Assembly (NCBI GenBank): GCA_002269645.1
Contig: NIVC01000126.1
Location: 1-64,000 of the forward strand
DNA length: 64,000 bases
Origin: Macrostomum lignano
Lineage: Eukaryota
Reading direction: 5' to 3'
In this document: piece after piece, positions 278 to 29,619 of the stretch
How positions within the stretch are numbered: the stretch's first letter is position 1
Layout: every line of letters starts with the position of its first letter
Notes under the pieces: generated by a model
What the model was told of the DNA's origin: nothing
The model's input: the letters and a program-made list of their open reading frames with translations, nothing else
The model's database searches: none
Program-made: the position numbers and the translations under genes

Positions 278-831
278 GCAGGACATCCAGGAGCAGCAGC
301 TACCAGGCAAAGCGGCCTACGCACAGTCTGGAGCTCGCTAATTTCCTGCCATTGTCGCCGCCGCAGCTGCACCGCTGGGTGAGCTCGCTGCCTAGCAACA
401 GTCGGCGCATTCGTGACACCTGAGCGGCTGATCGGCGTGCAGGCGCAATCTCGCCGGCTCTGTTCTGGCGTCGCAGGCGTGGCTGTAGTGAACCAGCTTG
501 GCCTGACAGCCGCGACTGGCTCGGCAAGACCCACCAGCTGGACGGCAGTCGACAGGCGTTCCACTTGGCGGCTCGTAGGCGCAGCGCGGCCGAAAATGTC
601 GGACATCTGCTGACAATCGGAGTCGTCAGCCGGACAGCCGCAGGTGGCCGCGTCGTTGGCGAACCGATCCGCGTAGGCGTAGAAGGCTTCGAGCTGGCCG
701 AGGCAGAGGGCGCGGTCGCGACAGGACCCGGCGGCCGGACATCCACTCGCAGGCCTGGGCCAGGGCGATGAAGCGTTGGAGACAGTCGAAATGTCGAACG
801 CAGCTCTGGTAGACTTCGAAACAGTTGGCCG
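278..831 (-). CDS. GFRa-like exon carrying domains 5 and 6 (several frameshifts)
   Basis: ccctcgcag|CG GCC AAC TGT; segments ANCFEVYQSCVRHFDCLQRFIALAQACEW / SCRDRALCLGQLEAFYAYADRFANDAATCGCPADDSDCQQMSDI / FRPRCAYEPPSGTPVDCRPAGGSCRASRGCQAKLVHYSHACD / MRRLLLGSELTQRCSCGGD lie in alternating frames. Lower boundary approximate. Confidence 0.7.
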
Positions 832-3800
832 CTGCGAGGGTGTTTTTAATTGGGGGGGGGGTGATTCACTCATTCACAGATGAACTTATAGGGATTCACA
901 TATTCACAGATGCTGATGGAGTGATTCACTCATTCACAGATGCTGATGGAGTGATGCACTCATTCACAGATGAACTTATAGGGATTCACATATTCACAGA
1001 TTCTGATGGAGTGATTCACTCATTCACAGATGAACTTATAGGGATTCACATATTCACAAATCCTGATGGAGTGATTCACTCACTCACAGATGCTGATGGA
1101 GTGATTCACTCATTCACAGATGCTGATGGAGTGATTCACTCATTCACAGATGCTGATGGAGTGATTCACTCATTCACAGATGCTGATGGAGTGATTCACT
1201 CATTCACAGATGCTGATGGAGTGATTCACTCATTTAAAGATGCTGATGGAGTGATTCACTCATTTAAAGATGCTGATGGAGTGATTCACTCATTCACAGA
1301 TGCTGATGGAGTGATTCACTCATTCACAGATGCTGATGGAGTGATTCACTCATTCACAGATGCTGATGGACTGATTCACTTTTACAATTGATTCATTTTG
1401 CTCTACTCATAGTGCATTATTTAGTGTTTAAAACTTCATTCTTACATTTGATCAACTGAAATGCTGAAGGATGAATAACCGATGCGCCTACGCTAGACTT
1501 GACAACGGCTTCTGAATCTGGCGACTTTCTGTCATCGTCTGGACTGCCAGCACCGATTTGCTGCTGCGGATCCTTGGACGACTTCGGGTGCAACAGACCG
1601 ATATTGTAGGCGTCGTTGAAGAATCCTGGCGTCGGGTGGAGGGTTCAGACTTCAGACACATCCTGGCATGCACTTTAAGCCCTCAGGTGTGTCTATATCA
1701 GCCCTCAGGTGTGTCTATATCAGCCCTCAGGTGTGTTTATATTAGCCCTCAGGTGTCTCTATATTAGCCTCAGGTGTGTCTATATTAGCCCTCAGGTGTC
1801 TATATCAGCCCTCAGGTGTCTATATTAGCCCTCAGGTGTGTCTATATTAGCCCTCAGGTGTGTCTATATCAGCCCTCAGGTGTCTATATTAGCCCGCAGG
1901 TGTGTCTATATCAGCCCTCAGGTGTCTATATTAGCCCTCAGGTGTCTATATAAGCCCTCAGGTGTCTATATCAGCCCTCAGGTGTGTCTTTATCAGCCCT
2001 CAGGTGTGTCTATATCAGCCCTCAGGTGTCTATATCAGCCCTCAGGTGTGTCTATATTTGCCCTCAGGTGTCTATATCAGCCTTCAGGTGTCTATATAAG
2101 CCCTCAGGTGTGTCTATATAAGCCCTCAGGTGTGTCTATATTCGCCATCAGGTGTTATCTATATAAGCCCTCAGGTGTCTGTATCAGCCTTCAGGTGTTT
2201 ATATTACCCCTCAGGTGTGTCTATATCAGCCCTCAGGTGTGATTATTAGCCCTCAGGTGTGTTTATATTAGCCCTCAGGTGTGTCTATATTAGCCTCAGT
2301 TGTGTCTTCATTAGCCATCAGGTGTGTCTATTTAAGCCCTAAGGTGTGTCTATATTAGCCCTCAGGTGTGTCTATATTAGCCCTCAGGTGTGTCTATATT
2401 AGCCTTCAGGTGTGTCTATATTAGCCCTCAGGTGTCTCCATATCAGCCCTCAGGTGTCTATATTAGTCCTCAGGTGTGTCTATATTAGCCTTCAGGTGTG
2501 TCTATATTAGCCCTCAGGTGTCTCCATATCAGCCCTCAGGTGTCTATATTAGCCATCAGTAATATAGAATAGCCCTCGCTCACTTAAGCAAACATTTCCC
2601 GGATAAACGCGTCGAATCCTATCGCACTGCAATCTCTCAGCGCGAGTATAGTTCAGACAGGTGCAGGGTATCAAGCCGTGATTCCGCAGGGCTTCGTAAG
2701 ACTGCAGGCAGGCTGCCCGTTGGCCGGGCACTTGCTGATATCGTCGAAGCCGCACCTGTCCTGAAAGGCTCTGGCGTCCGCTGCGCAGGTCGGATTGTCG
2801 AAGCAGCGACTTCGCCTCTCCAAGCAGCTGCCGCCGCGGCCATCGTCTGGCAGAGGCTCCGACTCGAGCTGCCTGATTTTGGCCAGGTAAGCGGCAGCTG
2901 AGCTGGCTAAGCTGCTGTTGCTTTTTAGGTTGTTGCTGCTTTCGCTATTGCTGCTTTTACTTGTATCGGTAAGGACGTCCGTTGAAGGGGCAACTACAAA
3001 GAATTAGAGTAGTTCAAATCGAAATTTTACTGATAAAATAAAAAATTCTGTTTGATTGATCAACACTCTACTTATAGTAGCTTGAAGACGCTACTGTTTA
3101 GATAAAATGATCAGGCTTCGCTTCGGCCCATAGAGCTCACAAGCAGTTCGCGAACATAGATAAGTGGGGAATGATGTATTTACTACACTTGGACCGGTGC
3201 CATAAACTGCAGAAACGTATTTATTCCCAACTTGGGAATAAAGTAGTCGATGCCCGGGCATGGATGAATTCATTCATCCATGTGCCCGGGCCCAAGTAGA
3301 AAATAAAGAGACGGAAGAAGCAATTAAAGTTTCTCTGCCATTTCTCTTCTCATTCTAGCTGGTCATGCATGTTGAGTTAACGGACCCGAGCACAAAACGC
3401 AGAATGCATGATGTATAACAGTTTCTGCTGATCATAGCACCGCACACACACAGCGAGACTGCAACCTCTCAAAAGGCCCTCGCTCCTTGACAAACGTTCG
3501 AAGCCGTGGATAGAAGAGAAATTGGGGAAAACCTCGGCCCCAGAAAAGAAGAGACGATTGCTAGATTCAATTAGGTGTCCCCGGGAGCTAGGCTAGGGGT
3601 GAGAGAGTGGGGGCTTGAAGAGGGTGACGGAGGAATAGGAAAAAGGGGAAAAGTGGCGGCCCCTCTAACGACCCAAGATAACACTGGTGAGGGGGTTCGC
3701 TTCGTTCCTGTTTGGCTTTCACTAATGCGCCTGCTATTTCCTTATGCCAGCACGCTGCATAACAAATATACATGTTAACTATATATTCAGTTTAAAAGCA

Positions 3801-6800
3801 TGTGCAAGAGCTGAATTGAAAACAAAATAGGACGGCAGGCAAAGTAAAGGACAATAAAGGACAATTTGGAAGAAGTGGGTTGACCTCTTTAGACGAAATA
3901 CCGCCTGCTACGACATTTATTTGTGTCCGTCATGAAAATTTCTGATTTGCGAATATTTTTACGCAACATATCGCCAAACTTGTTCTATTTAATTTAGTAG
4001 CCTCGGTTAAACATCTGTGTAAGATCAGAAGCTAATGTATGGCGCCAATATATTATTGACTAATTCAAATAGCCTAATAGCTAATATATGGTGCCAATGA
4101 ATTATTGACTAATTCTAATAGCCTAATAGCTAATATATGGTGCCAATGAATTATTGACTAATTCTAATAGCCTAATAAGCTAATATTGCGCCAGTATAAC
4201 ATTGACCAATTCTAACTGCCTAAGAAGATAATATAAGAGCCTCTCAAACTACACATACGACTCAATTTGACACAATCTAGAATCTGTGCCTAAAGATCTT
4301 TAATGAGGCTTAAGGAGACCGTTGGCTGAATCATTGCGATAAAGCGTAAGCCCTTTCGATCCCAGCAAGTCTTCAACTATCTGAGCCTATAAGCTCAGGC
4401 TCCAATGGCCAGCCGTAAGCCACATTGCATGCAGTTATTATCAATTTGATTCATCAGCAATGTCAAAACCGCGCGCTGGCTTCGAGCTGCAATTTGACAG
4501 GTGAATTTTCGCTTCTGTGGATTCATCTGCGCCACGACGCGTGGTTTGGCCACGGCTCAGCGATTGTTAGATATGATTTATTATTCTCGGTGAGACATAT
4601 TCCTATTAAAACTCCAGTTATCTAAGAGAATATATCGATTTTACGAAACAGGCTGTCACGCGCACAGCTGCGAAAATTTTTAATTCTTGGAGAACAGAGA
4701 GGCGCCATGGAGAACAGAGAGGCGCCATGGAGAACAGAGAGAGGCGCCATGGGGAACAGAGAGAGGCGCCATGGGGAACAGAGAGAGGCGCCATGGGGAA
4801 CACAGAGAAGCGCCATGGGGAACACAGAGAAGCGCCATGGGGAACAGAGAGAGGCGCCATGGGGAACAGAGAGAGGCGCCATGGGGAACAGAGAGAGGCG
4901 CCATGGGGAACAGAGAGAAGCGCCATGGGGAACAGAGAGAGGCGCCATGGGGAACAGAGAGAGGCGCCATGGGGAACAGAGAGAGGCGCCATGGGGAACA
5001 GAGAGAAGCGCCATGGGGAACAGAGAGAGGCGCCATGGGGAACAGAGAGAGGCGCCATGGGGAACAGAGAGAGGCGCCATGGGGAACAGAGAGAAGCGCC
5101 ATGGGGAACAGAGAGAAGCGCCATGGGGAACAGAGAGAAGCGCCATGGGGAACAGAGAGAGGCGCCATGGGAAACAGAGAGAGGCGCCATGGGAAACAGA
5201 GAGAGGCGCCATGGGAAACAGAGAGAGGCGCCATGGGGAACAGAGAGAGGCGCCATGGGGAACAGAGAGAGGCGCCATGGGGAACAGAGAGAAGCGCCAT
5301 GGGGAACAGAGAGAGGCGCCATGGGGAACAGAGAGAGGCGCCATGGGGAACAGAGAGGCGCCATGGGGAACAGGGGAATGGGATCTGTCTGCATGAAGAA
5401 CAGGGGAATGGGATCTGTCTGCATGGGGAACAGGGGAATGGGATCTGTCTGCATGGGGAACAGGGGAATGGGATCTGTCTGCATGGGGAACAGGGGAATG
5501 GGATCTGTCTGCATGGGGAACAGGGGAATGGGATCTGTCTGCATGGGGAACAGGGGAATGGGATCTGTCTGCATGGGGAACAGGGGAATGGGATCTGTCT
5601 GCATGGGGAACAGGGGACAGGAGTACCATGGGAACAAAACTGGGCAAAAACTAAACATCGGCTTCAGTTCACATCAGGCCATCGAATTCCCGTCAACTAG
5701 CCTTCTCAAATCCTTGAGCGCATCAGGAACTGACCAATTTAAATCCATTTCCTCCCAGTGCCAAACTGAAGCAAAAAAGCAAATTTATACTTCCTGTTCT
5801 GCTGAGTAGCCAGCAAGATCTGTCATCTTTAAAGAGGCTGCCCGTGGCAAACCACGAGAGACATTTCTTGTGCTCAGAACTCTATTACGACCTGTCTTGA
5901 CATTTTCCCCTGCTCAAAACTCATTCTGCGCATAGACGGAATTCCTGATTGGCAGAGAGCTTTAGGAAGACTTCTTCGACAAAAAAGGGAGAGTGGAATG
6001 AATATTGAAGGGGATTTTTGTGAACCCCTCCTCCCGCTCTCCTACAAGCAGCGGATGACTCATGGTTGAAAGTTCCTGTGAGGCACCGCCAGAGAGTGAA
6101 AGCTCCAGCGAGATGGAGAAATATTTGGTAATGCGGCTGGCTGACATTCAGGAAGCATCTGGGCTCATATCTTTTGCTGTAAGGTGCGTGCCGTCCAGTC
6201 CAGTGGAGTGCTTGAATAATTATCTAATCCTACATTTTACCTCCTTGCTTTTCTTTGCATTCGTATCTCATTTCTTAATTTCTGTGTTTAGTTTTTTATT
6301 AGATTTTCAATAGTCTCTCAGACTCTCTTTTAGTCTATTCTAATGTGTCTAAAGATCTAATCTAGTCCAGCTTCTCAGAATCTACCCGAAGTCTCTCAGA
6401 TTCTACATTCTACATTCTACAGTCTCAGAATCTACCCGAAGGCTATCCAAGTCTATTCTCTCCAAATCTGCTCTAGTCTCTCAGAATCTACTCTAGTCTC
6501 TCAGAATCTACTCTAGTCTCTCAGAATCTACTCTAGTCTCTCAGAATCTACTCTAGTCTCTCAGAATCTACTCTAGTCTCTCACAATCTACTCTAATATC
6601 TCAGAATGTACTCTAGTCTCTCAGAGTCTACTCTAGTGTCTCCGAATCTACTCTAATCTCTCAGAATCTACTCTAGTCTCTCAGAAATTACTCAAGAGTT
6701 TAGAATATATTCTAATCTCTTAGAATCTACCCGAAGTGTATCCAAGTCTATTCTCTCAAAATCTGCTTTAGTCTCTCGAAGTCTACTCTAATCTCTCAAA

Positions 6801-9800
6801 ATCTACTGTAATCTCTCAGAATTTACTCTAGTCTCTCAGAATCTACTCTAGTGTCTCTCAGAATCTACTCTAATCTCTCAAAATCTACTCTAATCTCTCA
6901 GATTTACTCTAGTCTCTCAGAATCTACTCTAATGTCTCAGAATCTACACTAGTGTCTCAGAATCTACTCTAGTATCTCATAATCTACTTTAGTCTCTCGA
7001 AGTCTACTCTAATATCTCAGAATTTACTCTAGTCTCTCAGAATCTACTCTAGTGTCTCCGAATCCACTCTTATCTCTCAAAATCTACTCTAGTCTCTTAG
7101 AATCTACTCTAGTCTCTTAGAATCTACTTTAGTCTCTTAGAATCTTCTCTAGTCTCTCAGAATCTGCTCTAATCTCTCAAAATCTACTTTAATCTCTCAG
7201 AATTTACTCTAGTCGATCAGAATATACTCTAACGTCTCTCAGAATCTACTCTAATGTATCAGAATCTACTCTTAATGTCTCTCAGAATCTACTATGGTCT
7301 CTCAGAATCTACTCTCGAAATCTACACTCGTCTCTCACCTTTAAAACTCTCTACCTACATCCGTATCCGTGTAAATATAGAAGGTGCTCGGCACATTCAA
7401 CAGCTTGACAAAACAGCCTAGGCGAATGTGGGCAAGTATGGGCTGAAAGCTTCAAGCATTCCAGCCTTGGCATTCCAAACTGACCGGGCAGTCAGACAAG
7501 GCGTTTTTGACAAACTCGCAGTTTTTTCGGAATTTTCTCTCGCAGCTTTAGGCTTCTTGTACAAAGAGCTTATAATTGGCGTTTCTTTTTCGTTTGACTC
7601 GCTTGTCCCCCGCTGTCTAAGATGGGTAATATTATATTTTGTCTGTTGCCATGCATAGCACTCACTAGGGGATTGGCTTCCCAAGGAAGAATGCAGTCCG
7701 AATAGCCTCGTTTCGGGTCTAACAGAGGCGCCAAAACCGCGCACACACACACACACAAGACAAGTCGTAGCTGCCTTGAATCCACTTAACTTTCGATTGA
7801 GGATCGCCGACAAAAGAGAATAAAGCATTCGGCTATCCACTTGACTTTGAGTTGGAGTTGGGTTAAAATTCTACTATTAATTGAAAAAAATAGACTGCAA
7901 AACTCTCGAGCTCTCAGAAGACAGCCAATGCAGAAATTTTAGTTCAGATAAAAAAGATAACTAATCCCTCGTAGTTCTTGATCTAGTCACAGAATCTACT
8001 CTAGTCTCACCGATTTTGCCTAATCTATTCTAGTGTATCTCAAGATCTAATCTATTCTGGTCTCTGACTATCTACTTTAGTTTTTCGGAACCTATTCTAG
8101 TCTCTTAGTGTCTACTCTAATCTCTCATTATCTACTCTAGTCTCTCATTTCTACTTTAGTCTCTCATTATCTACTCTAATCTCTCATTATCTACTCTAAT
8201 CTCTCATTATCTACTCTAGTCTCTCATTATCTACTCTAGTCTCTCATTTCTACTTTAGTCTCTCATTATCTACTCTAGTCTCTCATTATCTACTCTAGTC
8301 TCTCATTATCTACTCTAGTCTCTCATTTCTACTTTAGTCTCTCATTATCTACTCTAGTCTCTCATTATCTACTCTAGTCTCTCATTATCTACTCTAGTCT
8401 CTCATTATCTACTCTAGTCTCTCATTATCTACTCTAGTCTCTCATTTCTACTTTAGTCTCTCATTATCTACTCTAGTCTCTCATTATCTACTCTAGTCTC
8501 TCATTTCTACTTTAGTCTCTCATTATCTACTCTAGTCTCTCATTATCTACTCTAGTCTCTCATTTCTACTTTAGTCTCTCATTATCTACTCTAGTCTCTC
8601 ATTATCTACTCTAGTCTCTCATTTCTACTTTAGTCTCTCATTATCTACTCTAGTCTCTCATTATCTACTCTAGTCTCTCATTATCTACTCTAGTCTCTCA
8701 TTATCTACTCTAGTCTCTCATTATCTATTCTAGTCTCTCATTTCTACTTTAGTCTCTCATTATCTACTTTAGTCTCTCATTATCTACTCTAGTCTCTCAT
8801 TATCTACTCTAGTCTCTCATTTCTACTTTAGTCTCTCATTATCTACTCTAGTCTCTCATTATCTACTCTAGTCTCTCATTTCTACTTTAGTCTCTCATTA
8901 TCTACTCTAGTCTCTCATTATCTACTCTAGTCTCTCATTTCTACTTTAGTCTCTCATTATCTACTCTAATCTCTCATTATCTACTCTAGTCTCTCATTTC
9001 TACTTTAGTCTCTCATTATCTACTCTAGTCTCTCATTATCTACTCTAGTCTCTCATTATCTACTCTAGTCTCTCATTATCTACTCTAGTCTCTCATTATC
9101 TATTCTAGTCTCTCATTTCTACTTTAGTCTCTCATTATCTACTCTAGTCTCTCATTTCTACTTTAGTCTCTCATTATCTACTCTAGTCTCTCATTATCTA
9201 CTCTAGTCTCTCATTATCTACTCTAGTCTCTCATTATCTACTCTAGTCTCTCATTATCTACTCTAGTCTCTCATTATCTATTCTAGTCTCTCATAATCTA
9301 TTCTAGTCTCCCAGACTCTAATCTAGTGTCTCAGAATCTACTCTGGTCTCTCAGTGCCTAATCTAGTCGCTTAGAGTTGAATCTAGTCTCTCAGAATCAT
9401 CATAATTTTACTGCTCATAATTTTAGACGAGAGCCTCATACTTATTTTCTATAAAGATTCGTTAGAAAGACAAAATTTATGAATACTTTAATTATGAGAA
9501 AAATTACAATATTATAAATATGCTAGTTTGTGCACACTGAGAATTTTTTTAGAGCTGTATACTAACTTCACGTGGTCGAGTTTCTATTCCAAATCTTCGT
9601 TTAAAGGTGTCCACGGCAGGAGGAGCCGATAGGAGAATAGCAAATTGTGGACGGAGTGCAAGCTGGAGTTTCTGCTTTTTTATTTCGTTTCAAATTTGAC
9701 TCTTGGCCAGGGTTGAACACTTTATAGCATAACATAGTTATTAATAGCTGCTGTAGCTATTGGGCTGGCACATTTTCACTTTCCTAATTAATCAATATAG

Positions 9801-12800
9801 TAGAATAGTCTGATCTGATCTAATCTAATCTAATCTCTATGAATCTATACATTTTTCATTTTATTAAATGATTTATTCATTATCTAGCTCTATCTACCAG
9901 CTCGTAGTATGACCTCATCCAATCTAGTGTGATCTTATCTCATCTCATCTAATCTAGTGTGATCTTATCTCATCTCATCTAATCTAGAATGATCTTATCT
10001 CATCTCATCCAATCTAGTGTGACCTTATCTCATCTCATCTAATCTAGTGTGACTTTATCTCATCTCATCCAATTTAGTGTGACCTTATCTCATCTAATCT
10101 TATCTTATCAACTTTTTTCATCCGATTACATATGATCTAATCTTATTATCTATTCTTTCAGAACACGCAGAGATCCGATGACATATAACTTTATAAGCCA
10201 TTCCAGTAGCAGAGTTTCATATTTAACAAGATAGATCAGTCAGTTGCGACATTCACAAGCTGCATAATTATCGAGGCCAAGCAATACCAACCAACTCTAC
10301 CAGCCCCCGCTGATCGGGCAGATCATTAAGGTACGGCGGCGTCTGCGACGATCCAGCCCCTCGCTATTACCGGTAGTAGCTATGCATCGATTTGCAATAC
10401 CTCGCAGACATACGGCAGAAGCGAAGAGGCAAAGGTTGTATGGAGATTATTCTAATAAAACTGAATATGGCGGGCTGCCACAAAGGACCCCCCTCATCCC
10501 AGGGAGGGATCTTGATCTATCAATCTATAGAGGCCCATCTGTTTGATCTGTCACTCTCTTTGATAAATGTATGCTTTGCTGTTAGAGAGGCTGCAGCGGT
10601 GTCATTAACCAATGTATATGATAGCTTGCCAGAGTTGTTAGCGATTGAGATGTGCTAGACTAGGCTGGACTAAATAGATGTCAGGTACATTTAGGCGGAT
10701 AGGTAGGTAGACAGGTAGGCAGGCAGTTAGGTGGGAAGTCAGGTAGGTAGGTATAGGTAGGCAGGTAGAGAGGTAGGTAGGCAGGTAGGTAGTTAGGCAG
10801 CCAGGCATGTAGATAGTCAGGTAGGTAGGTACATGTAGGTAGATAGGTAGATAGGCAAGTAGATAGGCAGGTAGGCAGGTAGGCAGGTAGATAGGTAGGT
10901 AGGCAGGTAGGTAGCTAGGCAGGTAGGCAGGTAGGCAGGTAGGCAGGTAGATAGGCAAGTAGGCAGGTAGGCAGGTAGGCAAGGTAGGTAGGCAGGTAGA
11001 TAGGCAGGTAGGCAGGTAGGCAGGTAGGCAAGGTAGTAGGCAGGTAGATAGGCAAGTAGGCAGGTAGGCAGGTAGGCAAGGTAGGTAGGCAGGTAGATAG
11101 GCAGGTAGGCAGGTAGGCAGGTAGATAGGCAAGTAGGCAGGTAGGCAAGGTAGGTAGGCAGGTAGATAGGCAAGTAGGCAGGTAGGCAGGTAGGCAAGGT
11201 AGGTAGGCAGGTAGATAGGCAGGTAGGCAGGTAGGTAGGCAGGTAGGCAGGTAGATAGGTAGGTAGGCAGGTAGGTAGGTAGGCAAGGTAGGTAGGCAGG
11301 TAGATAGGCAAGTAGGCAGGTAGGCAGGTAGGCAAGGTAGGTAGGTAGGCAGGTAGATAGGCAGGTAGGCAGGTAGGCAGGTTGGCAGGTAGATAGGTAG
11401 GTAGGCAGGTAGGTAGGTAGGTAGGTAGGTAGACAAGTAGGCAGGTAGGTAGGTAGGTAGGTAGGTAGACAATTAGGCAGGTAAGCAGGTAGGCAGGTAG
11501 GCAGGTAGGCAGGTAGGCAGGTAGGTAGGTAGGTAGGTAGACAAGTAGGCAGGTAGGCAGGTAGGCAGGTAGGTAGGTAGGTAGGTAGACAAGTAGGCAG
11601 ACAGGCAGGTAGGCAGGTAGGCAGGTAGGCAGGTAGGCAGGTAGGCAGGTAGGCAGGTAGGTAGGTAGGTAGGTAGACAAGTAGGCAGACAGGCAGGTAG
11701 GCAGGTAGGCAGGTAGGCAGGTAGGCAGGTAGGCAGGTAGGCAGGTAGGCAGGTAGGCAGGTAGGTAGGTAGGTAGGTAGACAAGTAGGCAGACAGGCAG
11801 GTAGGCAGGTAGGCAGGTAGGCAGGTAGGCAGGTAGGTAATAACAAGAGCAAACCTGGCAGTCGCACGCCGCCAGGAGCAGACCTGCCGGCCGCCAGCTT
11901 GCAGGGATGGTTGAACAGGTATTCCCAGACATTCATGCAGCGCGTTAGTTCGCTTGGCGGTTCGATGGACTTGGGGCAGAAGCACTCCAGGCCCGGTTCC
12001 ATCTTGTGCAAGTTGTTCAGGTGTTCCAAACAGATTTCCAACTCGTTCGGCAGCTCCAGCTGGCATTTTCCGACTGCGAATGGTATAAAAAAAACCTCAT
12101 CGTTTATTACAGGTTTCGGATTAGCCATCTTTATTGCCTGTATTTTTGCACTTTAGCAGCAGCACATCAAATCCCAGCCAAACTAACAGCTGATCTTCTC
12201 TCCCATGGGTTGAGAACTGCAAGAGGCCAGTGAGGCCAGTGAGCTCCATAATCCATAGGCTGGCTAAAAAGAAGCTGACACTTCGAGCTGCTGAATAATA
12301 ATCTCCTGAGATAGGAACTGCTGGTACTAACGTTCCTCTAGACATAACAGACAGACAGGATGTTAATTTGTTCTATTACTACATTCCATGATGTTGGCTA
12401 GATTAGCAATCCATTCTATTCATTTTTCTGTAATGCTGGCTAGATTAGCTATCCATTATATTCCTTCATCTGTGATGTTGGCTATAGATTAGCAATCCAT
12501 TCTATTCATTTATCTGTGATGTTGGCTATAGATTAGCAATCCATTCTATTCATTTATCTGTGATGTTGGCTATAGATTAGCAATCCATTCTATTCATTTA
12601 TCTGTGATGTTGGCTATAGATTAGCAATCCATTCTATTCATTCATCTGTGATGTTGGCTATAGATTAGCAATCCATTCTATTCCTTCATCTGTGATGTTG
12701 GCTATAGATTAGCAATCCATTCTATTCCTTCATCTGTGATGTTGGATAAACTAGTTTCTAGCAATCCACCCAGCTAAGCATGCCACGGAGGCCGAAGAGG

Positions 12801-18800: not shown

Positions 18801-21800
18801 CTTTCAATCCGGGGATGCCACTTTTAATCCGGAGATGCCACTTTCAATCCGGAGATGCCACTTTCAATCCGGGGATGTCACTTTCAATCCGGAGATGCCA
18901 CTTTCAATCCGGATGTGCCACTTTCAATCCGGGGATGCCACTTTTAATCCGGAGATGCCACTTTCAATCCGGAGATGCCACTTTCAATCCGGGGATGTCA
19001 CTTTCAATCCGGAGATGCCACTTTCAATCCGGATGTGCCACTTTCAATCCGGGGATGCCACTTTTAATCCGGAGATGCCACTTTCAATCCGGAGATGCCA
19101 CTTTCAATCCGGGGATGTCACTTTCAATCCGGAGATGCCACTTTCAATCCGGATGTGCCACTTTCAATCCGGGGATGCCACTTTTAATCCGGAGATGCCA
19201 CTTTCAATCCGGAATGCCACTTTCAATCCGGGGATGTCACTTTCAATCCGGAGATGCCACTTTCAATCCGGAGGTGCCACTTTCAACCCGGGGATGTCAC
19301 TTTCAATCCGGAGATGCCACTTTCAATCCGGAGGTGCCACTTCAATCCGGAGATGCCACTTTCAATCCGGAGATGCCACTTTCAATCCGGAGGTGCCACT
19401 TTCAATCCGGAGATGCCACTTTCAATCCGGAGGTGCCACTTTCAAAATCAAAGGCGCCATTATCAGAATCTGTTAGGATGCCAAACTCAATTCAGATGTT
19501 TAAATCAGAGGACTTAGTTTGAGAAGTTAAATCTAAAGGCCTGTTTAATTTAGGACTACTTACTCAGTTGATTAAATATATCCCTATATCGTGTCAAAAA
19601 TGTCACTTACAAAGCGGAACTCCACCAAAACTGCGATAGATACAAAAAACGTTTTTGGCGTATTTGACATTTGCATAGGTTAATACAGTTGCTAAGGAGA
19701 AGCCGGTTTAGCAAGTAGCTATAATAGAGCTTTGTGCATTCAATTCAGAAAATTGCTGAGTGTATAGGAACTATAGGAAGCCATCTAAAGCCGGTAACCG
19801 GATGAGGGGCAAATATAGACTCCCAATTTGAAATTCTGCCTGATGAAACCTTACCAGTTGCATTTTCAGTGGTGGCAAGCTGTTTATATTGACAGACTTA
19901 CAATATAGTATAAGGCAATTTTTTATAACGCGCGAATGACGCAATATGCGAGACGCATCGCCGACAAAGCTTTTCAGAGCCCGCATACGAACTGATTAGT
20001 TGATAGGTATTAGAAAAGCTTTTATCAGATTGCTATCCATTGCAAACCCTGTTCAATGTGAGGGCTACCATGATAGTGTCATTCACAAAAGCACCCCACG
20101 TGTGCGAGGTTTCAACGACCAACTGATATTTGTCTGTCACGTGCGTCTATCTATGAGACTTTTGAGAAGCATATAGATATAAGAGAAGCGGCCTGGAAAG
20201 TAGAAAGTGTTTCCAAGAATATGAGCTCAGGGGTTTTTCTGGGTCCTGGTATCACTTCTTTACATGTATAAACCAACTTATCCTCACTTCAATAGAATGG
20301 ATTGCTAATCTAGCCAATATCACGGATGAAGGAATAGAATGGATTGCTAATCTAGCCAATATCACGGATGAAGGAATAAAATGGATTGCTAATCTAGCCA
20401 ATATCACGGATGAAGGAATAGAATGGATTGCTGATCTAGCCAATATCACGGATGAAGAAATAGAACGGATTGCTAATCTAGCCAATATCACGGATGAAGG
20501 AATAGAACGGATTGCTAATCTCGCCAATATCACGGATGAAGGAATAGAACGGATTGCTAATCTAGCCAATATCACGGATGAAGGAATAGAATGGATTGCT
20601 AATCTAGCCAAACTAAATGAAGTCAGAAAATTCAAGTATCAGCACCCCAAGCCAAGGTCAGAAAATTTAGCGAATCGCGAGCTCACAGCATGCGGACCGA
20701 ATGTCGGTCTTAGCCGAGCCAGTTTAAAGAAATCGGGGACAATTTCCCTCCCCGCTATTTAGCTTTAATGGAATGATGTCGTTATAAAGCGCCCAGGAAG
20801 CCCCTCAGAGTCAAGGAGAATATTTTTGAGTAGCTTAGGGATGCTCCTCGAGAAAGGAAATTACTCTAAACTAATGCTTCCCTCGCTTTTAGCAGATGGG
20901 ATTTCAAATTTAAGCCGCTACTTCGCGTGTACTTACTAATGCTTCTAGGAGGGGGGAGTGGGCAATACAGGACTTGAAGAAGTGCGCCATCTTAGCAAAT
21001 CACTCTCGACTCAAACTGAGGCCTCTAGTCTCAGGCATGCTATACGTATTAAACAAGTATCCAGGCAAAAGAGCAAGTAACACTCGAGAGTAGCTCTTAG
21101 TTGTAGGATAAATGCCTGGATTGGATTATAACGCAGCCTCCCTATACGACTCTAACAAGGACTCTTCCTAAGCTGCAGTATTGATTTGTACAGCTTCAAA
21201 GCGAGACTAAATTTATAACCAATGAATTACCTGTGGATTAGGTTGACCAAACTGATAACTGCCCCCACTCCCCCCTATAGAGTGACCCCTACCCCCTGCA
21301 GCTAGACGAATAACGAAGGAACTCAACTTTTGTCACTTAATGGATGTGCCATCCACTGGCCTAGAAGACGGGGGTAGGAGCGACAACCAATGAGACAGGG
21401 GCGCCTACCTAGGAGACAGGGGCGCCCACCCAAGAGACAGGGGCACCTAGCTAGGAGACAGGGGCGCCCACCTAGGAGACAGGGGCGCCCACCCAAGAGA
21501 CAGGGGCGCCCACCCAAGAGACAGGGGCGCCCACCCAAGAGACAGGGGTGCCCACTCAAGAGACAGGGGCGCCCACCCAAGAGACAGGGGCGCCCACCCA
21601 AGAGACAGAGACGCTCACCCAAGAGACAGGGGCGCCCACCCAAGAGACAGGGACGCTCACCCAAGAGACAGGGGCGCCCACCCAAGAGACAGGGGTGCCC
21701 ACCCAAGAGACAGGGGCGCCCACACAAGAGACAGGGGCGCCCACCCAAGAGACAGGGGCGCCCACCCAAGAGACAGGGACGCTCACCCAAGAGACAGGGG

Positions 21801-24800
21801 TGCCCACCCAAGAGACAGGGTGCCCACCCAAGAGACGGGGCGCCCACCCAAGAGACAGGGGCGCCCACACAAGAGACAGGGGCGCCCACCCAAGAGACAG
21901 GGGCGCCCACACAAGAGACAGGGGCGCCCACCCAAGAGGCAGGGGCGCCCACTCAAGAGACAGGGGCGCCCACTCAAGAGACAGGGGCGCCCACCCAAGA
22001 GACAGGGGCGCCCACTCAAGAGACAGGGGCGCCCACTCAAGAGACAGGGGCGCCCACCAAGAGACAGGGGCGCCCACCCAAGAGACAGGGACGCCCACCC
22101 AAGAGACAGGGGCGCCCACTCAAGAGACAGGGGCGCCCACCCAAGAGACAGGGGCGCCCACCCAAGAGACAGGGGCGCCCGCCCAAGAGACAGGGACGCT
22201 CACCCAAGAGACAGGGGTGCCCACCCAACAGACAGGGTGCCCACCCAAGAGACGGGGCGCCCACACAAGAGACAGGGGCGCCCACCCAAGAGACAGGGGC
22301 GCCCACACAAGAGACAGGGGCGCCCACCCAAGAGACAGGGGCGCCCACTCAAGAGACAGGGGCGCCCACTCAAGAGACAGGGGCGCCCACCCAAGAGACA
22401 GGGGCGCCCACCCAAGAGACAGGGGCGCCCACTCAAGAGACAGGGGCGCCCACTCAAGAGACAGGGGCGCCCACCCAAGAGACAGGGGCGCCCACCCAAG
22501 AGACAGGGACGCCCACCCAAGAGACAGGGGCGCCCACTCAAGAGACAGGGGCGCCCACCCAAGAGACAGGGGCGCCCACCCAAGAGACAGGGGCGCCCAC
22601 CCAAGAGACAGGGGCGCCTAGCTAGGAGACAGGGGCGCCCACCCAAGAGACAGGGGCGCCCACTCAAGAGACAGGGGCACCTAGCTAGGAGACAGGGGCG
22701 CCCACCTAGGAGACAGGGGCGCCCACCTAGGAGACAGGGACGCCCACACAAGAGACAGGGCGCCCGCTAAGAGACAGGGGCGCCCACCCAAGAGACAGGG
22801 GTGCCCACTCAAGAGACAGGGGCGCCCACCCAAGAGACAGGGACGCCCGCTCAAGAGACAGGGACGCCCGCCCAAGAGACAGGGGCGCCCACCCAAGAGA
22901 CAGGGACGCCCGCCCAAGAGACAGGGACGCTCACCCAAGAGACAGGGGCGCCCACCCAAGAGACAGGGGTGCCCACTCAAGAGACAGGGGCGCCCACCCA
23001 ATAGACAGGGACGCCCGCCCAAGAGACAGGGACGCCCGCCCAAGAGACAGGGGCGCCCACCCAAGAGACAGGGACGCCCGCCCAAGAGACAGGGACGCTC
23101 ACCCAAGAGACAGGGGCGCCCACCCAAGAGACAGGGGCGCCCACTCAAGAGACAGGGGCGCCCACCCAAGAGACAGGGACGCCCGCCCAAGAGACAGGGA
23201 CGCCCGCCCAAGAGACAGGGGCGCCCACCCAAGAGACAGGGGTGCCCACCCAAGAGACAGGGGTGCCCAATCAAGAGACAGGGGCGCCCACCCAAGAGAC
23301 AGGGACGCCCGCCCAAGAGACAGGGGCGCCCACCCAAGAGACAGGGGTGCCCACTCAAGAGACAGGGGCGCCCACCCAAGAGACAGGGACGCCCGCCCAA
23401 GAGACAGGGGCGCCCACTCAAGAGACAGGGGCGCCCACTCAAGAGACAGGGGCACCTAGCTAGGAGACAGGGGCGCCCACCTAGGAGACAGGGGCGCCCA
23501 CCTAGGAGACAGGGGCGCCCACCTAGGAGACAGGGACGCCCACCCAAGAGACAGGGCGCCCGCTAAGAGACAGGGGCGCCCACCCAAGAGACAGGGGTGC
23601 CCACTCAAGAGACAGGGGCGCCCACCCAAGAGACAGGGACGCCCGCTCAAGAGACAGGGACGCCCGCCCAAGAGACAGGGGCGCCCACCCAAGAGACAGG
23701 GACGCCCACTCAAGAGACAGGGGCACCTAGCTAGGAGACAGGGGCGCCCACCTAGGAGACAGGGGCGCCCACCTAGGAGACAGGGACGCCCACCCAAGAG
23801 ACAGGGCGCCCGCTAAGAGACAGGGGCGCCCACCCAAGAGACAGGGGTGCCCACTCAAGAGACAGGGGCGCCCACCCAAGAGACAGGGACGCCCGCCCAA
23901 GAGACAGGGACGCCCGCCCAAGAGACAGGGGCGCCCACCCAAGAGACAGGGGTGCCCACTCAAGAGACAGGGGCGCCCACCCAAGAGACAGGGACGCCCG
24001 CCCAAGAGACAGGGGCGCCCACCCAAGAGACAGGGGCGCCCACCCAAGAGACAGGGGTGCCCAATCAAGAGACAGGGGCGCCCACCCAAGAGACAGGGAC
24101 GCCCGCCCAAGAGACAGGGGCGCCCACCCAAGAGACAGGGGCGCCCACCCAAGAGACAGGGGTGCCCACTCAAGAGACAGGGGCGCCCACCCAAGAGACA
24201 GGGGCGCCCACCCAAGCGACAGGGGCTCCCACCAAGACAGCAAACATTGGCGCCCCACAGGGCTGCGGCCCCTTAAATTAAAACTCCTGCTTGCAGCTGT
24301 GCTCCTTAGAGGAGAGCAGTGATCAGAGTAGTGAGCCTACAGTTGTCTGAAAGTGGCTGGCGGCTGCTGGAAGTGAGTTCTTACTGACTCCAGGATCTGT
24401 TTCTATAAGGTCTCCTTGGAGTTGGGATCAAACCCGAGGAGGGGAGCAGAGATGATAAAAAGTGAGGAAAATTCCATGAGATATCGTCCTGGGAAATCAG
24501 TTGGCTAAGCAGGGTCCCAATAAGGAAAGCTATCCACTTTTTTATATACATGTATTGTAAACTATAGGCACAGATGCGCCCGCCATTGTGCAGTTGCAGG
24601 AAGTTCCTCAGCCTTACTCAAATCACCCCCTCAAGGGGGGGGGGTGGTTCACAGTCGGGGTGAGAAGGAGTCTCGACACATACTCGTACTAGTCATAGTT
24701 TTATTGCGCTTTGGGGGAAAATCCTAAACTGAAAAAAGTGCGTCCCGGACTGCACAACAGAAAACGCAGACCACGAAGGATACGAATAGAAACAGAAAAA

Positions 24801-27800
24801 GGATGCCTGTTACTGAGGAAGCAGACAACGCGTTCAGCATCAATTCTCCCCAAATGTCCAGTGAGTAATATGAGAATAGGAAGGAAGATCAAGATTTTTT
24901 TCAATCGGGTCAGTAAAAATGAAAATTTATTTTTTTCCTACCTCACACCACAATTGACAAAGGGATGGTAAAGACAGGCAATTCATTGATGATATTAAAA
25001 TACATGGAAGACGTCATGCATCAATAACAATAGCTCTGTGTATATGATGGCATCCACTATAACTCATAGATTAGATTTTGAAACTCACGGTCCCTGCAGA
25101 GGGTGCGAACCAGGCTGAGCTTCGAGCCGCATTCCGAGCGCTGGTAGCAACTGTCGTTAACCATGTGACAGAATTTGACCTGTCTGGCTGAGACTTCGGC
25201 TGAGCACAGTGGCAAGATGAGCAGCAGGATACCTGCAGCTGGAGAGGGGGGTTGGGATGGATTGCTAGTCTAGCCAGCATTGATGAAGGAATAGAATGGA
25301 TTGTAGCCTATAGACGGGGATTGTAGCCTAGTGGTCAGAGCGTCGGACTCACGACTGAGTCGGTGGGGGTTCGATTCTCGATTCACTCGGAACAATTTGT
25401 GTCCTTGAGCGAGACACTTAACTCTGCATTGCTTCAGTTCACCCAGCTGTAAAATGGATGCCAACACTAGCTGAGGTAATTGAGGCTGTGTGTGGCGACC
25501 CCCCAGTCCTTGGACTGAACAGCCGTACGCAGCCTTCAGATGCGCCGCGCAATAGCTGCGGCTGAGCTGTCGGGTGCACATCTGCCCATTGGGGCAGGTG
25601 TAAGTCAATTATTTTTATTATTAGAATAGATTTCTAATCTAGCCAATCATCCAACCTAGACAGTGTCTCCAAAAGACGAGATTTTCGTAGATTCGAAATT
25701 GGAGAAACGCGGTAGGAATGATACACAGGATTGCAGAGTCAGAATGCTTGGTTGGCGCTTGTAGCCGAGAGAACTCATCATCATCATCATCATCATCATC
25801 AGTCAAATTATCGCGGCACCCTAGAGGGAGAGACGGATCGAGAGAAAGGGGCGCAGAGATGAACGAGGCGGCCTCGCCCCAACTGTGTCAAAAATAGAGC
25901 CGACACTGATAAGATAATCACTAAGCCGCGACGAGAGTTGCTGACTGACTGATTATCAAATTTGCGCTTCGGATATCATTCTAGTTATCTCCAAAATAGT
26001 CGCTCTCGGACTCAAAAAATTAATAATTACGCGAGTTTGGGAAAAGCGAGGATAACAGCGGACTGGCTGACAGTTAATCCGTTTGCGTCATTGGACAGAA
26101 GAATCTCTCCCTATGCGGGTGAGTTGATGAGGCAACGGAAGTTGCCATCCAACGGAAGCTGGGACGATGACGCGCTGATGCGCTCAAGTCTCTGGGGACT
26201 CAACAGTCGTGACCCTCACTCCCAGCCCCCGAGGGTCGAAGTTATCAAGGAACTGCCCGGATATACAATTTGACTCTTGGAAGAAGCAAACTAATCAACA
26301 GTAAAAACTTTTGATGAGGCAATCTTGATGAATCTAATAGAGATTTCTGGATCCTAAAGTCCCAATCGCTACATTGGGTTTTTGGAGACATGGGAGATAG
26401 CGACAAGAGACACATCAGACATGGAAGATAGCAACAAGAGACACATCGGGCATGGGAGATAGCGACAAGAGACACATCAGACATGGGAGATAGCGACAAG
26501 AGACACATCAGACATGGGAGATAGCGACAAGAGACACATCAGACATGGGAGATAGCTACAATAGACACATCAGACATGGGAGATAGCTACAATAGACACA
26601 TCAGACATGGGAGATAGCTACAATAGACACACCAGACATGAGAGATAGCGACAAGAGACACATCGGGCATGGGAGATAGCGACCAGAGACACATCGGTCA
26701 TGAGAGATAGCGATAAGAGACACATCGGGTATGGAAGATAGCGATAAGAGACACATCGGGTATGGGAGATAGCGACAAGAGACACATCAGACATGAGAGA
26801 TAGCGACAAGAGACACATCGGGCATGGGAGATAGCGACAAGAGACACACCAGACATGGGAGATAGCAACAAGAGACACATTGGGCATGGAAGATAGCGAC
26901 AAGAGACACATCGGGCATGGGAGATAGCGACAAGAGACACATCAGACATGAGAGATAGCGACAAGAGACACATCGGGCATGGGAGATAGCGACAAGAGAC
27001 ACTGTAAAAGTATTCTTCAAAGCATTGATGTAAAGGGTTTTTAACGGCAACAGAAGTCAGTTTTTTGTCAATAAGAGGACTTGATGTCTTCTTAAAGCTT
27101 TTTTTACCTCGCTTCCCCAACCTACCTGCGAAAGAGGGGGGGGGGGGTAAGTAAAAAATTGCAAGCTAACGTTTTCATTTTCGTTCGCTTTCTCGGGCGA
27201 TTTTTTCCCGGTAATAAAAATGATAATATATATTAACTAACATAGCTATAGACAAATGATACATACTGAGCGCAAGGTATCTGCAGATGCTTGTACTAGT
27301 AATTAGATAACAATAGCTTGATCCTTTATCTATCTAGCCTAACGTTGCTCATAATGCTATATCTCTGTTTAGGCATCTCAGCCGGCATATATGTTTTGAT
27401 GCTTCTTCTGAAACGAGAATCTAAGCAATGATTTGATTTAGTTTAGATCCAAATACACGAAATGCAGTGCATTAATGACGGGTTTTTATTTCGATGTTCG
27501 AACAGCAAACTGTTCAACTGTTTTTCTCCTTAGTCTATAATACTCTCATTGAATACCAGTTTGCAGCTCCCATCTAGTCTATGGAATTGTATATCTAGTA
27601 TATAGGATTCCCCATCTAGTCTATAGGTTTCCCCCATCTAGTCTATAGGATTCACCATATAGTCTATAGGATTCCCCATCCACTCTATAGGATTCACCAT
27701 CTAGTCTATAGGATTCACCATATAGTCTATAGGATTCACCATCTAGTCTATAGGATTCCCCATCTAGTCTATAGGATTCACCATCTAGTCTATAGAGTTC

Positions 27801-28998: not shown

Positions 28999-29044
<46 letters not shown>

Positions 29045-29514
29045 ATGCAACAACAAAACAATTCTTTATTCCTTTTGAGCCGCGGTCGGCAAATGTGTAT
29101 AGCTATATAGCCATTGAGTTTGAGTGTGCGGCGCCGCGGAGAGGTGGGAAGTGTGTGTGTCTTGAGGAGAAGGGATTTAGCGCTCTCCGTAGGATTTCAA
29201 GCGATTAGCTATGGTTGTATTATTAGGGGAAGATTTTGTCACCCCCCTCTTTCCTTTGGCTCCTCCTGTGCATATTGACTACTTTAGCTTCGTTAGGGCT
29301 CAAGCGACGGATGCTTGCAGCCAGGCCTGAGTCTGAGAGTCAGAAGCGCGGCCAAGCATTACTCATCATCTGCACTGATGTGGCCTTCAGTTTCAGAGAC
29401 TGCATGCGGTTTGTCTCGGCAATGCAGCGTGGCGAATAAGCCGGCTCGCTCTTTGAATACTAAATGCGCTGATGATGTGATGGAAGCGGCGGTGGACTGC
29501 ATGATGAGTGAAGA
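278..29514 (-). CDS. GDNF family receptor alpha / GAS1-like multi-domain secreted protein gene (whole-locus model; 3' end runs off the left edge)
   Basis: Manual splicing of minus-strand exons with GT-AG boundaries and compatible phase-1 junctions gives a signal peptide MQSLKLKATSVQMMTAGILLLILPLCSA. This is followed by repeated 10-Cys domains with C-x6-C-x5-C-x10-C...C-x-C...C...N/H-x-C spacing, characteristic of the GDNF/GAS1 domain. Confidence 0.8.
860..1385 (+). repeat. 30-bp minisatellite GATGCTGATGGAGTGATTCACTCATTCACA
   Basis: About 17 copies, with a variant unit GATGAACTTATAGGGATTCACATATTCACA occurring three times. Confidence 0.95.
1446..1662 (-). CDS. GFRa-like linker exon (5' end disturbed)
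   Basis: Open frame TLHPTPGFFNDAYNIGLLHPKSSKDPQQQIGAGSPDDDRKSPDSEAVVKSSVGASVIHPSAFQLIK T|gtaaga (phase 1, matches next exon). The acceptor ccag at 1663-1664 leaves 217 nt, so an indel or a different acceptor is required. Confidence 0.5.
1675..2560 (+). repeat. 20/22-bp minisatellite TCTATATTAGCCCTCAGGTG(TG)
   Basis: About 40 copies filling nearly the whole intron 1663-2583. Confidence 0.95.
2584..2993 (-). CDS. GFRa-like exon: Ser-rich linker + complete domain 4 (one frameshift near 2720)
   Basis: tttgtag|TT GCC CCT...TTA A|gtgagc; 410 nt (411 expected for phase 1-1). SCLERRSRCFDNPTCAADARAFQDRCGFDDISKCPAN / RAACLQSYEALRNHGLIPCTCLNYTRAERLQCDRIRRVYPGNVCL has 10 Cys. Confidence 0.8.
4030..4230 (+). 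repeat. ~50-bp tandem repeat GCTAATATATGGTGCCAATGAATTATTGACTAATTCTAATAGCCTAATA
   Basis: About 4 copies. Confidence 0.85.
4425..4667 (-). pseudogene. Broken exon completing putative domain 3
   Basis: ttttcgcag|C TGT GCG CGT GAC supplies S-C of the C-x-C motif when joined to exon 7355. The frame then breaks (stops), and the lower boundary is uncertain. Confidence 0.35.
4690..5625 (+). repeat. Compound minisatellite: 22-bp GGCGCCATGGGGAACAGAGAGA then 30-bp GGGGAACAGGGGAATGGGATCTGTCTGCAT
   Basis: The two arrays abut at ~5370 and share CATGGGGAACAG. Confidence 0.95.
6360..7320 (+). repeat. 20-bp minisatellite CTCTAGTCTCTCAGAATCTA
   Basis: About 45 variably degenerate copies. Confidence 0.95.
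7355..7616 (-). pseudogene. Broken GDNF-domain exon (putative domain 3, C1-C7)
   Basis: ...KTPCLTARSVW(NAKAG), then after a frameshift CPHSPRLFCQAVECAEHLLYLHGYGC-AG|gtagag. ECAEHLLYLH resembles domain 1 ICLEHLNNLH. The phase-2 donor matches the acceptor at 4667. Confidence 0.5.
8000..9380 (+). repeat. 20-bp minisatellite CTCTAGTCTCTCATTATCTA (19-bp variant CTTTAGTCTCTCATTTCTA)
   Basis: About 60 highly homogeneous copies; sister of the 6360-7320 unit. Confidence 0.95.
9910..10110 (+). repeat. 30-bp repeat TTATCTCATCTCATCTAATCTAGTGTGATC
   Basis: About 6 copies. Confidence 0.85.
10200..10450 (-). pseudogene. Decayed GDNF-domain-like exon remnant (putative domain 2)
   Basis: Cys motifs spread across frames: CLFASAVC (C-x6-C), YCKSMHSYYR, YCLAS, YAACECRN (C-x-C). 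Multiple stops and frameshifts; boundaries approximate. Confidence 0.35.
10680..11838 (+). repeat. Compound (AGGT/AGGC)n microsatellite
   Basis: Over 1.1 kb of tetranucleotide units starting 17 bp from the donor of exon 11855; source of the PTCLPAYL ORFs. Confidence 0.97.
11855..12073 (-). CDS. GFRa-like exon: second half of domain 1
   Basis: ttttataccattcgcag|TC GGA AAA TGC...CCA G|gtttgc; 219 nt, phase 1-1; GKCQLELPNELEICLEHLNNLHKMEPGLECFCPKSIEPPSELTRCMNVWEYLFNHPCK completes the 10-Cys domain begun in exon 25089-25238. Confidence 0.85.
12385..12750 (-). repeat. 42/44-bp dispersed minisatellite family, copy 1
   Basis: Reverse complement of GAAGGAATAGAATGGATTGCTAATCT(AT)AGCCAACATCAC; about 8 units. 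Confidence 0.9.
13540..13980 (+). repeat. Degenerate ~38-bp repeat CATCCATAGATATCTAGATCCTTAGATCTCT
   Basis: Recurrent CTAGATCC/AGATCTCT units. Confidence 0.75.
14446..14676 (-). mobile_element. tRNA-derived SINE, family A, internally deleted copy
   Basis: Near-identical to 25316-25622 in the head (B box GGTTCGATTC) and 3' part, but lacks ~70 bp between GACACTT and GTGTGGCGACC. Confidence 0.8.
15135..15506 (+). mobile_element. tRNA-derived SINE, family B
   Basis: A box TAGCCTAGTGG (15141-51), B box GGCTCGATTCC (15191-15201), unrelated body and an A-rich end (TGCCTCTAGTAAAAAA). Confidence 0.65.
16140..16495 (+). repeat. 18-bp minisatellite AGTTTGTGTAATC(CAATT/TAGTC)
   Basis: About 19 copies of two alternating variants. 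Confidence 0.95.
16975..17212 (+). repeat. ~34-bp repeat GGTCTCGCGGTGCCATCAAAGTGCCATTTTTAA
   Basis: About 7 degenerate copies. Confidence 0.85.
17985..19445 (+). repeat. 20-bp minisatellite GCCACTTTCAATCCGGAGAT with 120-bp higher-order repeat
   Basis: About 70 copies; a 6-unit block is repeated almost exactly from 18661 to ~19200. Confidence 0.97.
20288..20612 (+). repeat. 42-bp dispersed minisatellite family, copy 2
   Basis: AATAGAATGGATTGCTAATCTAGCCAATATCACGGATGAAGG, about 7.5 units. Confidence 0.92.
21390..24238 (+). repeat. 21-bp GC-rich minisatellite CAAGAGACAGGGGCGCCCACC
   Basis: About 135 copies over 2.85 kb with internally duplicated variant blocks. Confidence 0.97.
25089..25238 (-). 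CDS. GFRa-like exon: signal peptide H-region + first half of domain 1
   Basis: ctctccag|CT GCA GGT...GAC C|gtgagt; 150 nt, phase 1-1; encodes AGILLLILPLCSAEVSARQVKFCHMVNDSCYQRSECGSKLSLVRTLCRD. Not shown in this frame in the ORF track. Confidence 0.85.
25316..25622 (+). mobile_element. tRNA-derived SINE, family A (full length, CORE/Meta-like central domain)
   Basis: A box TAGCCTAGTGG (25324-34) and B box GGTTCGATTC (25358-67). Central GTGTCCTTGAGCGAGACACTTAACTCT...CAGTTCACCCAGCTGTAAAATGG resembles the CORE/Meta SINE domain. (TTA)-rich tail; a second copy lies at 14446-14676. Confidence 0.8.
26385..27005 (+). repeat. 31-bp minisatellite CATGGGAGATAGCGACAAGAGACACATCAGA
   Basis: About 20 copies. 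Confidence 0.95.
27585..28345 (+). repeat. 21-bp minisatellite CATCTAGTCTATAGGATTCCC
   Basis: About 35 copies. Confidence 0.95.
29363..29405 (-). CDS. GFRa-like first coding exon (N-region of signal peptide); full exon probably 29363-29514
   Basis: ATG CAG TCT CTG AAA CTG AAG GCC ACA TCA GTG CAG ATG ATG A|gtaatg. The phase-1 donor matches the phase-1 acceptor of exon 25238. A strong polypyrimidine tract + cacag acceptor lies at 29515-29516. Confidence 0.6.
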
Positions 29515-29619
29515 CTGTGTACGAGAGAGTGAGAGTGAGAGTAAAAACAGAGGAGACTGATTGGATAGAGGAGAGATGGTGGGAGAGAGAGAGAGGAGAT
29601 ACAGGTGAGGGTAGGAGAC

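Follow-up and report, generated by a model that had tools for sequence, protein, structure and literature searches.

Mlig008712, a gene encoding a four-domain GFRα-like protein among minisatellite introns of Macrostomum lignano

We analysed a 64,000-nucleotide (nt) stretch of DNA from the flatworm Macrostomum lignano (contig NIVC01000126.1, positions 1 to 64,000; hereinafter, the window), the minus strand of which harbors the gene Mlig008712. We consider it very probable that positions 278-34593 contain exons 1-6 of the seven coding exons of this gene, that its product belongs to the invertebrate Gfr-like family, that the breaks in its reading frame are consensus errors, and that the gene is functional. 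Neither the gene nor its domain content is new: both are on record in GenBank, where the products PAA63459.1 and PAA75274.1 have been deposited, and in UniProt; as a discovery, the finding matters little and is of modest use only. A preliminary description of the region recognized a gene of the GFRα/GAS1 superfamily with small exons scattered among minisatellite introns on the minus strand, which is borne out, and took it to be hidden, which it is not, being annotated already.

In an exhaustive HMMER search, the hand-assembled peptide retrieved PAA75274.1 (811 residues) at 98% identity, with an E-value of 2e-191. This record, named "hypothetical protein BOX15_Mlig008712g2", represents the g2 copy of the gene; its cluster mate PAA63459.1 (g1, 820 residues) is UniProt entry A0A267ERK2, "GDNF/GAS1 domain-containing protein". 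A word-index protein search with the hand-spliced peptide gave no match, and searches of the same kind with PAA63459.1 and with the family alignment returned PAA75274.1 alone among the matches listed. Two Mlig008712 loci from the assembly GCA_002269645.1 (Mlig_3_7), here denoted L001 and L002, were used for comparison. On L002, a unique GT-AG model with seven coding exons (94, 150, 219, 411, 180, 570 and 839 nt, from exon 1 to exon 7) reproduces PAA63459.1 exactly. All six coding introns of this model (L002 10001-43593) are in phase 1, so that the internal exons are symmetric, and the skipping or shuffling of any of them would keep the frame. Exon 7, which encodes residues 542-820 (the end of the last domain, the C-terminal region and a hydrophobic tail), lies outside the window, past its left end (L002 42755-43593). 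The protein contains four ten-cysteine domains, D1 to D4, with D1 encoded in exons 2 and 3, D2 in exon 4, and D3 together with D4 in exon 6. In the window, the exons, the candidate exon of the preliminary description and two of the introns are arranged as follows:

34593..34500, minus strand: coding exon 1, with the ATG and residues 1-31 (MPSSADNK...GCLLL), ending in phase 1; 100% identical to PAA63459.1 by tblastn
29514..29363, minus strand: first exon according to the preliminary description (MQSLKLKATSVQMM), with donor GTAATG, phase 1 and a plausible splice context; outside the annotated model
25238..25089, minus strand: coding exon 2, with the hydrophobic core of the predicted signal peptide (AAGILLLILPLCSAEVSA) and Cys1-Cys4 of D1; donor GTGAGT
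12074..25088, minus strand: intron 2, 13,015 nt, phase 1, mostly minisatellites; interrupts D1 between Cys4 and Cys5
12073..11855, minus strand: coding exon 3, with Cys5-Cys10 of D1 and the start of the linker; donor GTTTGC, phase 1
3001..11854, minus strand: intron 3, including 4425-7616 and 10200-10450; no GDNF-like coding signal by profiles or Pfam
2993..2584, minus strand: coding exon 4, with a Ser/Asn-rich linker and the whole of D2; one G missing at about 2726
1625..1446, minus strand: coding exon 5, the D2-D3 linker, with no Cys domain; identical to L002
831..278, minus strand: coding exon 6, with D3 and D4; 12 indel events in the window

The exon boundaries at 25238/25089, 12073/11855, 2993 and 278, read by eye in the preliminary description, coincide with the window coordinates of the public model. 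Stop-to-stop frames on the minus strand contain Cys-rich peptides at the positions given in that description. Good splice sites in phase 1 are present on both sides of the long intron and beyond it (acceptors before 25238, 12073 and 2993; donors after 25089 and 11855), and splicing of 25238..25089 to 12073..11855 yields a hydrophobic leader followed by a complete ten-cysteine domain; the earlier claim of such a domain split by a 13-kb intron (12074-25088) is thus confirmed. Likewise, the junction from 11855 to 2993 in phase 1, proposed as the source of a four-domain isoform, is the annotated one. Intron 2 varies in length between the copies, from about 10.1 kb in L002 to 12.4 kb in L001. The eukaryotic sequence of the window abounds in minisatellites, and tandem repeats make up about 46% of positions 278-29514. 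One minisatellite family with a 42-44-nt unit forms three arrays (12389-12745, 20291-20611 and 51642-52176), the first of which runs in the opposite orientation to the others; intron 2 therefore contains an inverted pair about 7.5 kb apart.

The placement of the first exon, which was supposed to encode the signal peptide, at 29514..29363 does not hold: the public gene models of Mlig_3_7 are transcript-based (PMC5730564), and the model for this gene starts at 34593..34500. Exon 1 of the window does not differ from that of L002, where the counterpart donor is GTGAGA. The segment 29514..29363 is missing from both PAA75274.1 and PAA63459.1, and the 211-nt region around it is identical across all three copies, which neither supports nor excludes its use as an alternative first exon; such use is possible but unsupported. 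Alternative first exons have been shown for Drosophila Gfrl and are conjectural in M. lignano.

Each of D1-D4 has ten cysteines, among them the CxC pair (Cys7-x-Cys8) expected of the GDNF domain. To count the domains, the entire window was searched in six frames with two profiles, one for the full-length family and one for a generic domain, and with variants of each from which Macrostomum sequences were excluded. The Macrostomum-free profiles rank the annotated exon pieces at the top (E-values from 3e-7 to 0.06), and with the full-length profiles these pieces, which are the only ones to score, come mostly in collinear order. No fifth GDNF-like module was detected anywhere in the window by these searches. 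It is therefore highly improbable that the protein acquires five or six GDNF domains through cassette exons in intron 3, as implied by the preliminary description, which counted two Cys-patterned, broken modules at 4425-7616 and 10200-10450. Cys-containing peptides are indeed visible in both segments, and any exon with phase 1 at both ends would keep the frame, given that the introns are all in phase 1. However, the domain profile reaches at most 3.5 bits there (E >= 16), which equals the background on the plus strand, the full-length profile fares no better (E >= 16), and a Pfam scan of the candidate peptides from the two segments yields no match; furthermore, the transcript-based models of both copies skip these segments, and the relatives of the protein all have exactly four domains. 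Since nothing GDNF-like was detected in the introns by these searches, the claim of up to six domains is not supported, and four were found. The three further domains placed at 278-2993 are real (D2 in exon 4, D3 and D4 in exon 6), but the frame breaks within them had gone unnoticed.

Several lines of evidence bear on the family assignment. The Pfam family PF02351 (GDNF) matches PAA63459.1 with 49.1 bits (E-value 1e-12) over three stretches, compared to the gathering score of 22 bits. When the frame shifts in the window are bridged, D2 scores 28.4 bits and D3 24.2 bits; half-domains from single frames mostly failed to pass the HMMER filters in the Pfam scan. A phmmer search of the PDB sequences with the spliced peptide gave no match; the profile of the spiralian family alone succeeded, retrieving GFRα1, GFRα2, GFRα3 and GFRAL chains at E-values from 1e-26 to 1e-16, with GAS1 reaching 0.26 only. 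In these alignments, D3-D4 of the family fall on D2-D3 of GFRα, and D2 of the family falls, weakly, on D1 of GFRα. The AlphaFold2 model has a mean pLDDT (predicted local distance difference test score) of 58, with values of 70-85 in the four domains, each of which is helical, and with disordered linkers; given that the input alignment was shallow (12 sequences), the model is of moderate quality only. When this model was compared to the PDB with Foldseek, the best 26 matches were all GFRα or GFRAL (E-values from 2e-7 to 1e-4), with target-normalized TM-scores of 0.50-0.76, rising to 0.66-0.76 where the chain consists of the two-domain (D2-D3) unit alone; for such chains, the root-mean-square deviation is 3.5-5.3 Å over about 205 columns. 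The C-terminal region produced no significant fold match in the Foldseek search.

On the strength of the Pfam, PDB profile and Foldseek results, the predicted protein is classified as GFRα-like, of the invertebrate Gfr-like type, and as neither GAS1 nor a vertebrate-type GFRα. There is very little chance that it is an ortholog of GAS1, that is, a co-receptor of the Hedgehog type. PF02351 spans the domains of both GDNF receptors and GAS1, the UniProt name of A0A267ERK2 is generic, and GAS1 (PDB 7rhq, chain G) is listed by Foldseek; apart from the shared Pfam family, the resemblance is marginal, with a profile E-value of 0.26 versus 1e-26 for GFRα, a Foldseek E-value of 0.016 and a TM-score of 0.38, whereas the best 26 fold matches belong to GFRα or GFRAL without exception. 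GAS1 is a two-domain protein, in contrast to the four domains and long C-terminal region found here.

Relatives with four domains were identified in several spiralians: the annelid Owenia fusiformis (CAH1785397.1), the nemertean Tubulanus polymorphus (XP_074660378.1), and the trematodes Schistosoma (CAH8566628.1) and Calicophoron (CAL8070990.1); M. lignano itself encodes a paralog, PAA94097.1 (Mlig031393). All 40 domain cysteines are invariant in the six spiralian proteins. The relatives and the paralog are collinear with the M. lignano protein over the whole length; like it, they carry the motif LYLGLG(Y/F)S in a shared C-terminal region and have a hydrophobic tail. The differences lie in the overall sequence identity (20-24%, and 43% for the paralog), in the lengths of the linkers and in total size, the trematode proteins being about 170-180 residues longer; PF02351 recognizes three or four stretches in most of the relatives and two in the paralog. 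No Gfr-like sequence from insects or nematodes was among the matches listed in the HMMER and word-index protein searches. The Pfam family DUF7921 (PF25537) comes just below its threshold of 27 (24-26 bits) at residues 640-681 of the Owenia protein and 564-602 of the Tubulanus protein, in the Cys-rich part with which the conserved C-terminal region begins; the Macrostomum protein has no such match.

The preliminary description interpreted the domain set as a lineage-specific expansion and suggested that domain counts be taken in orthologs. These counts speak against it: the plan of four domains with 40 cysteines is common to Owenia, Tubulanus, Schistosoma and Calicophoron, and Drosophila Gfrl also has four domains (PMC3527400), as the preliminary description itself had stated. 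Thus, the M. lignano protein is an unremarkable representative of an invertebrate family that was already known, and its architecture is that of the Gfr-like proteins published in 2012. Across flatworms, annelids and nemerteans, the four-domain Gfr-like plan is accompanied by the conserved C-terminal module, which supports the existence of an ancient proto-GFRα.

The closest described counterpart is Drosophila Gfrl ('munin'; Kallijärvi et al. 2012), which consists of a signal peptide, four ten-cysteine GFRα-like domains (D0-D3), a long spacer that separates the last domain from the anchor, and a short hydrophobic C-terminal signal for a glycosylphosphatidylinositol (GPI) anchor, and is encoded in a large gene with long introns; a similar protein in C. 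elegans has been noted as well (PMC3527400). The flatworm protein is alike in its four domains, long spacer and large gene with long introns, and has a putative signal peptide and a hydrophobic tail that may be a GPI signal. With 820 residues, it is smaller than the fly protein, the GPI site of which is predicted at G1008 (PMC3527400), and its region downstream of D4 is not threonine- or mucin-rich, unlike that of Drosophila Gfrl. Vertebrate GFRα1-4 and GFRAL (for example, PDB 4ux8, 7aml, 5mr4, 6q2s, 5vz4) share the fold and the cysteine pattern, their GPI-type tail has a putative counterpart in the flatworm protein, and their ligand-binding D2-D3 unit aligns with the flatworm D3-D4 (profile E-value 1e-26, TM-score 0.66-0.76). 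However, the sequence identity is only about 16-22%, the vertebrate proteins have at most three domains followed directly by a stalk and anchor, compared to four domains in the flatworm, with the extra one at the N-terminus, and vertebrate GFRα lacks the conserved stretch of about 280 residues at the C-terminus.

In the window, the reading frames of D2, D3 and D4 are interrupted by 13 small frame-breaking indel events, one in exon 4 and 12 in exon 6. In exon 4, a single-base deletion relative to L002 at about 2726 (CCC-GG) shifts the frame inside D2. In exon 6, the events occur near positions 734, 593, 545, 531, 466, 449, 446, 434, 414, 323, 302 and 294, and the last 45 nt are garbled, including the donor, which reads GTGTCA in place of GTGAGT; in both Mlig_3_7 copies, exon 6 is a single open frame. 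Short introns bridging the breaks in D2 and D3 were considered and discarded, since by inspection no GT...AG pair restores the frame and the 30-nt candidate in exon 4 leaves the frame wrong; at these sites, a single extra or missing base is all that sets the Mlig_3_7 copies apart. 'Backstep' joins in the coding sequence were also rejected as the source of the public protein, because the E in VQLVES requires a base that is absent from the window.

A three-way count over positions 278-10100 shows that the window agrees with L002 at every substitution site. In the aligned part of intron 3 (about 2.6 kb), the window has no unique indels and no unique substitutions, as opposed to 11 unique indels in exon 6 and one in exon 4. 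GC content is highest in exon 6, at 65%, where 78% of the 100-nt windows reach at least that value, compared to 5% in an intact 3.4-kb zinc-finger open reading frame (ORF) elsewhere in the window. Mlig_3_7 and the older ML2 assembly derive from the same published PacBio reads; Mlig_3_7 was in addition polished with Illumina and RNA-seq data, and intact ORFs are fewer in ML2 (PMC5730564). Most likely, the indels in exons 4 and 6 are uncorrected long-read consensus errors in GC-rich sequence rather than real mutations. The simplest reading, we infer, is that the window comes from an assembly in which GC-rich exons retained such errors. The case illustrates how exon-confined indels in one assembly can make a working gene resemble a pseudogene.

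The obvious alternative is that the window contains a real third copy of Mlig008712, a homeolog or an allele, that is decaying to a pseudogene through frameshifts. Such a copy would account for the 13 frame-breaking events and the damaged donor of exon 6, and the genome is known to be a recent polyploid with duplicated loci (PMC5730564); the window also carries substitutions of its own at 13974-29595 that occur in neither L001 nor L002, and the neighboring 1149-residue ORF is intact. Nevertheless, we regard decay as unlikely. In genuine decay, substitutions far outnumber indels and introns are affected as well, whereas here positions 278-10100 equal L002 at all substitution sites, and 12 indel events are packed into about 1 kb of exon against none in the intron; this pattern of exon-confined indels next to an untouched intron argues against biological decay. 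Most events add or remove one base only, in several cases within a short run of G or C, and the overall pattern is that expected of RNA-seq-polished versus unpolished exons. A narrower version, in which the 13 events are real and mark a third, recently silenced homeolog in which single-base indels struck in a burst, in GC-rich exons only, and left the introns untouched, appears more improbable still; if true, it would suggest that a mutational or transcription-associated process of an unusual kind acts soon after genome duplication.

Some observations weigh against the interpretation of the window as a functional Gfr-like gene with consensus errors. The splice junctions and indels were read from the assembled sequence alone, the signal peptide and GPI signal were judged by hydropathy, and the likeness to the Gfr-like proteins of Drosophila and C. 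elegans is drawn from the published description. On its own, D1 scores 15-18 bits with PF02351, which is under the Pfam threshold. The intact zinc-finger ORF indicates that base quality is not poor throughout the window; yet, this ORF is less GC-rich (54%). In principle, RNA-seq polishing could also have repaired a truly broken copy in Mlig_3_7; that g1 and g2 retain their own distinguishing substitutions in exon 6 argues against such overwriting.

Comparison of the copies suggests purifying selection on the domains, given the excess of synonymous changes in the domain exons. There, the comparison of g1 with g2 gives 11 synonymous changes against a single non-synonymous one. Within the window, all five differences from L002 in exon 3 are synonymous and as in L001, and the two differences from L002 in exon 2, which are unique to the window, are synonymous as well. 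In the linker exon, three synonymous and three non-synonymous changes separate g1 from g2, and in exon 7, 10 synonymous and seven non-synonymous; these two exons appear to be freer to change. Since the differences between the copies in the domain exons are overwhelmingly synonymous, the gene is probably functional. The window as a whole is a mosaic, L002-like at 278-10100 and 30007-40270, L001-like in exon 3, and with its own substitutions (about 1%) at 13974-29595, a pattern consistent with different ways of assembling a polyploid genome. In both Mlig_3_7 copies, partial tandem duplications of exon 7, covering its last ~100 codons (residues 719-820), lie some 3-9 kb downstream of the gene (L002 47659-47964, L002 52657-52962 and L001 48756-49061), with 95-96% identity at the amino-acid level.

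At the N-terminus, hydropathy analysis delineates the hydrophobic core LLLAAGILLLIL (Kyte-Doolittle value of 3.2), followed by CSAEVSA. By the same measure, PAA63459.1 ends in a run of small residues, GGGTVNG, and then a hydrophobic tail at the extreme C-terminus, which looks like a GPI-anchor signal. The preliminary description suggested looking for such a tail to the left of the window, and exon 7 of L002 indeed encodes a hydrophobic one, its GPI nature being a matter of hydropathy. A hydrophobic C-terminal tail is found in every relative, and the distance from Cys10 of D4 to the C-terminus is 280 residues in PAA63459.1 and 293-368 in the relatives.

Judging by this architecture (four GFRα-type domains, preceded by a leader and followed by the C-terminal region and the tail), the product would be a GPI-anchored extracellular protein exposed on the cell surface. 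By analogy with Drosophila Gfrl, it could serve as a co-receptor or an adhesion partner of NCAM/FasII-type molecules. The premise of the preliminary description that invertebrate receptors of this kind have no established ligand seems to be dated, to judge from the title of a 2018 article by Myers et al. in Development, which reportedly names Maverick, Ret and Gfrl as working together; with that title as the basis, the flatworm protein may also work with RET and a ligand of the TGF-β superfamily such as Maverick.

The remainder of the window contains several other features. The zinc-finger ORF at 52195-55644 (minus strand) is an intact single exon that encodes a polyglutamine-rich C2H2 zinc-finger protein of 1149 residues (Pfam zf-C2H2, 64 bits). 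At 59508-60932 (plus strand), pieces of a mariner-type transposase are found in several frames, indicative of a degenerate copy, with 60447-60929 matching Pfam Transposase_1 at 28 bits. Finally, a 230-residue ORF rich in Gln, Pro and His (46700-47392, minus strand) adjoins a minisatellite with a 28/56-nt unit (47192-47700) and may be an exon of another low-complexity protein.

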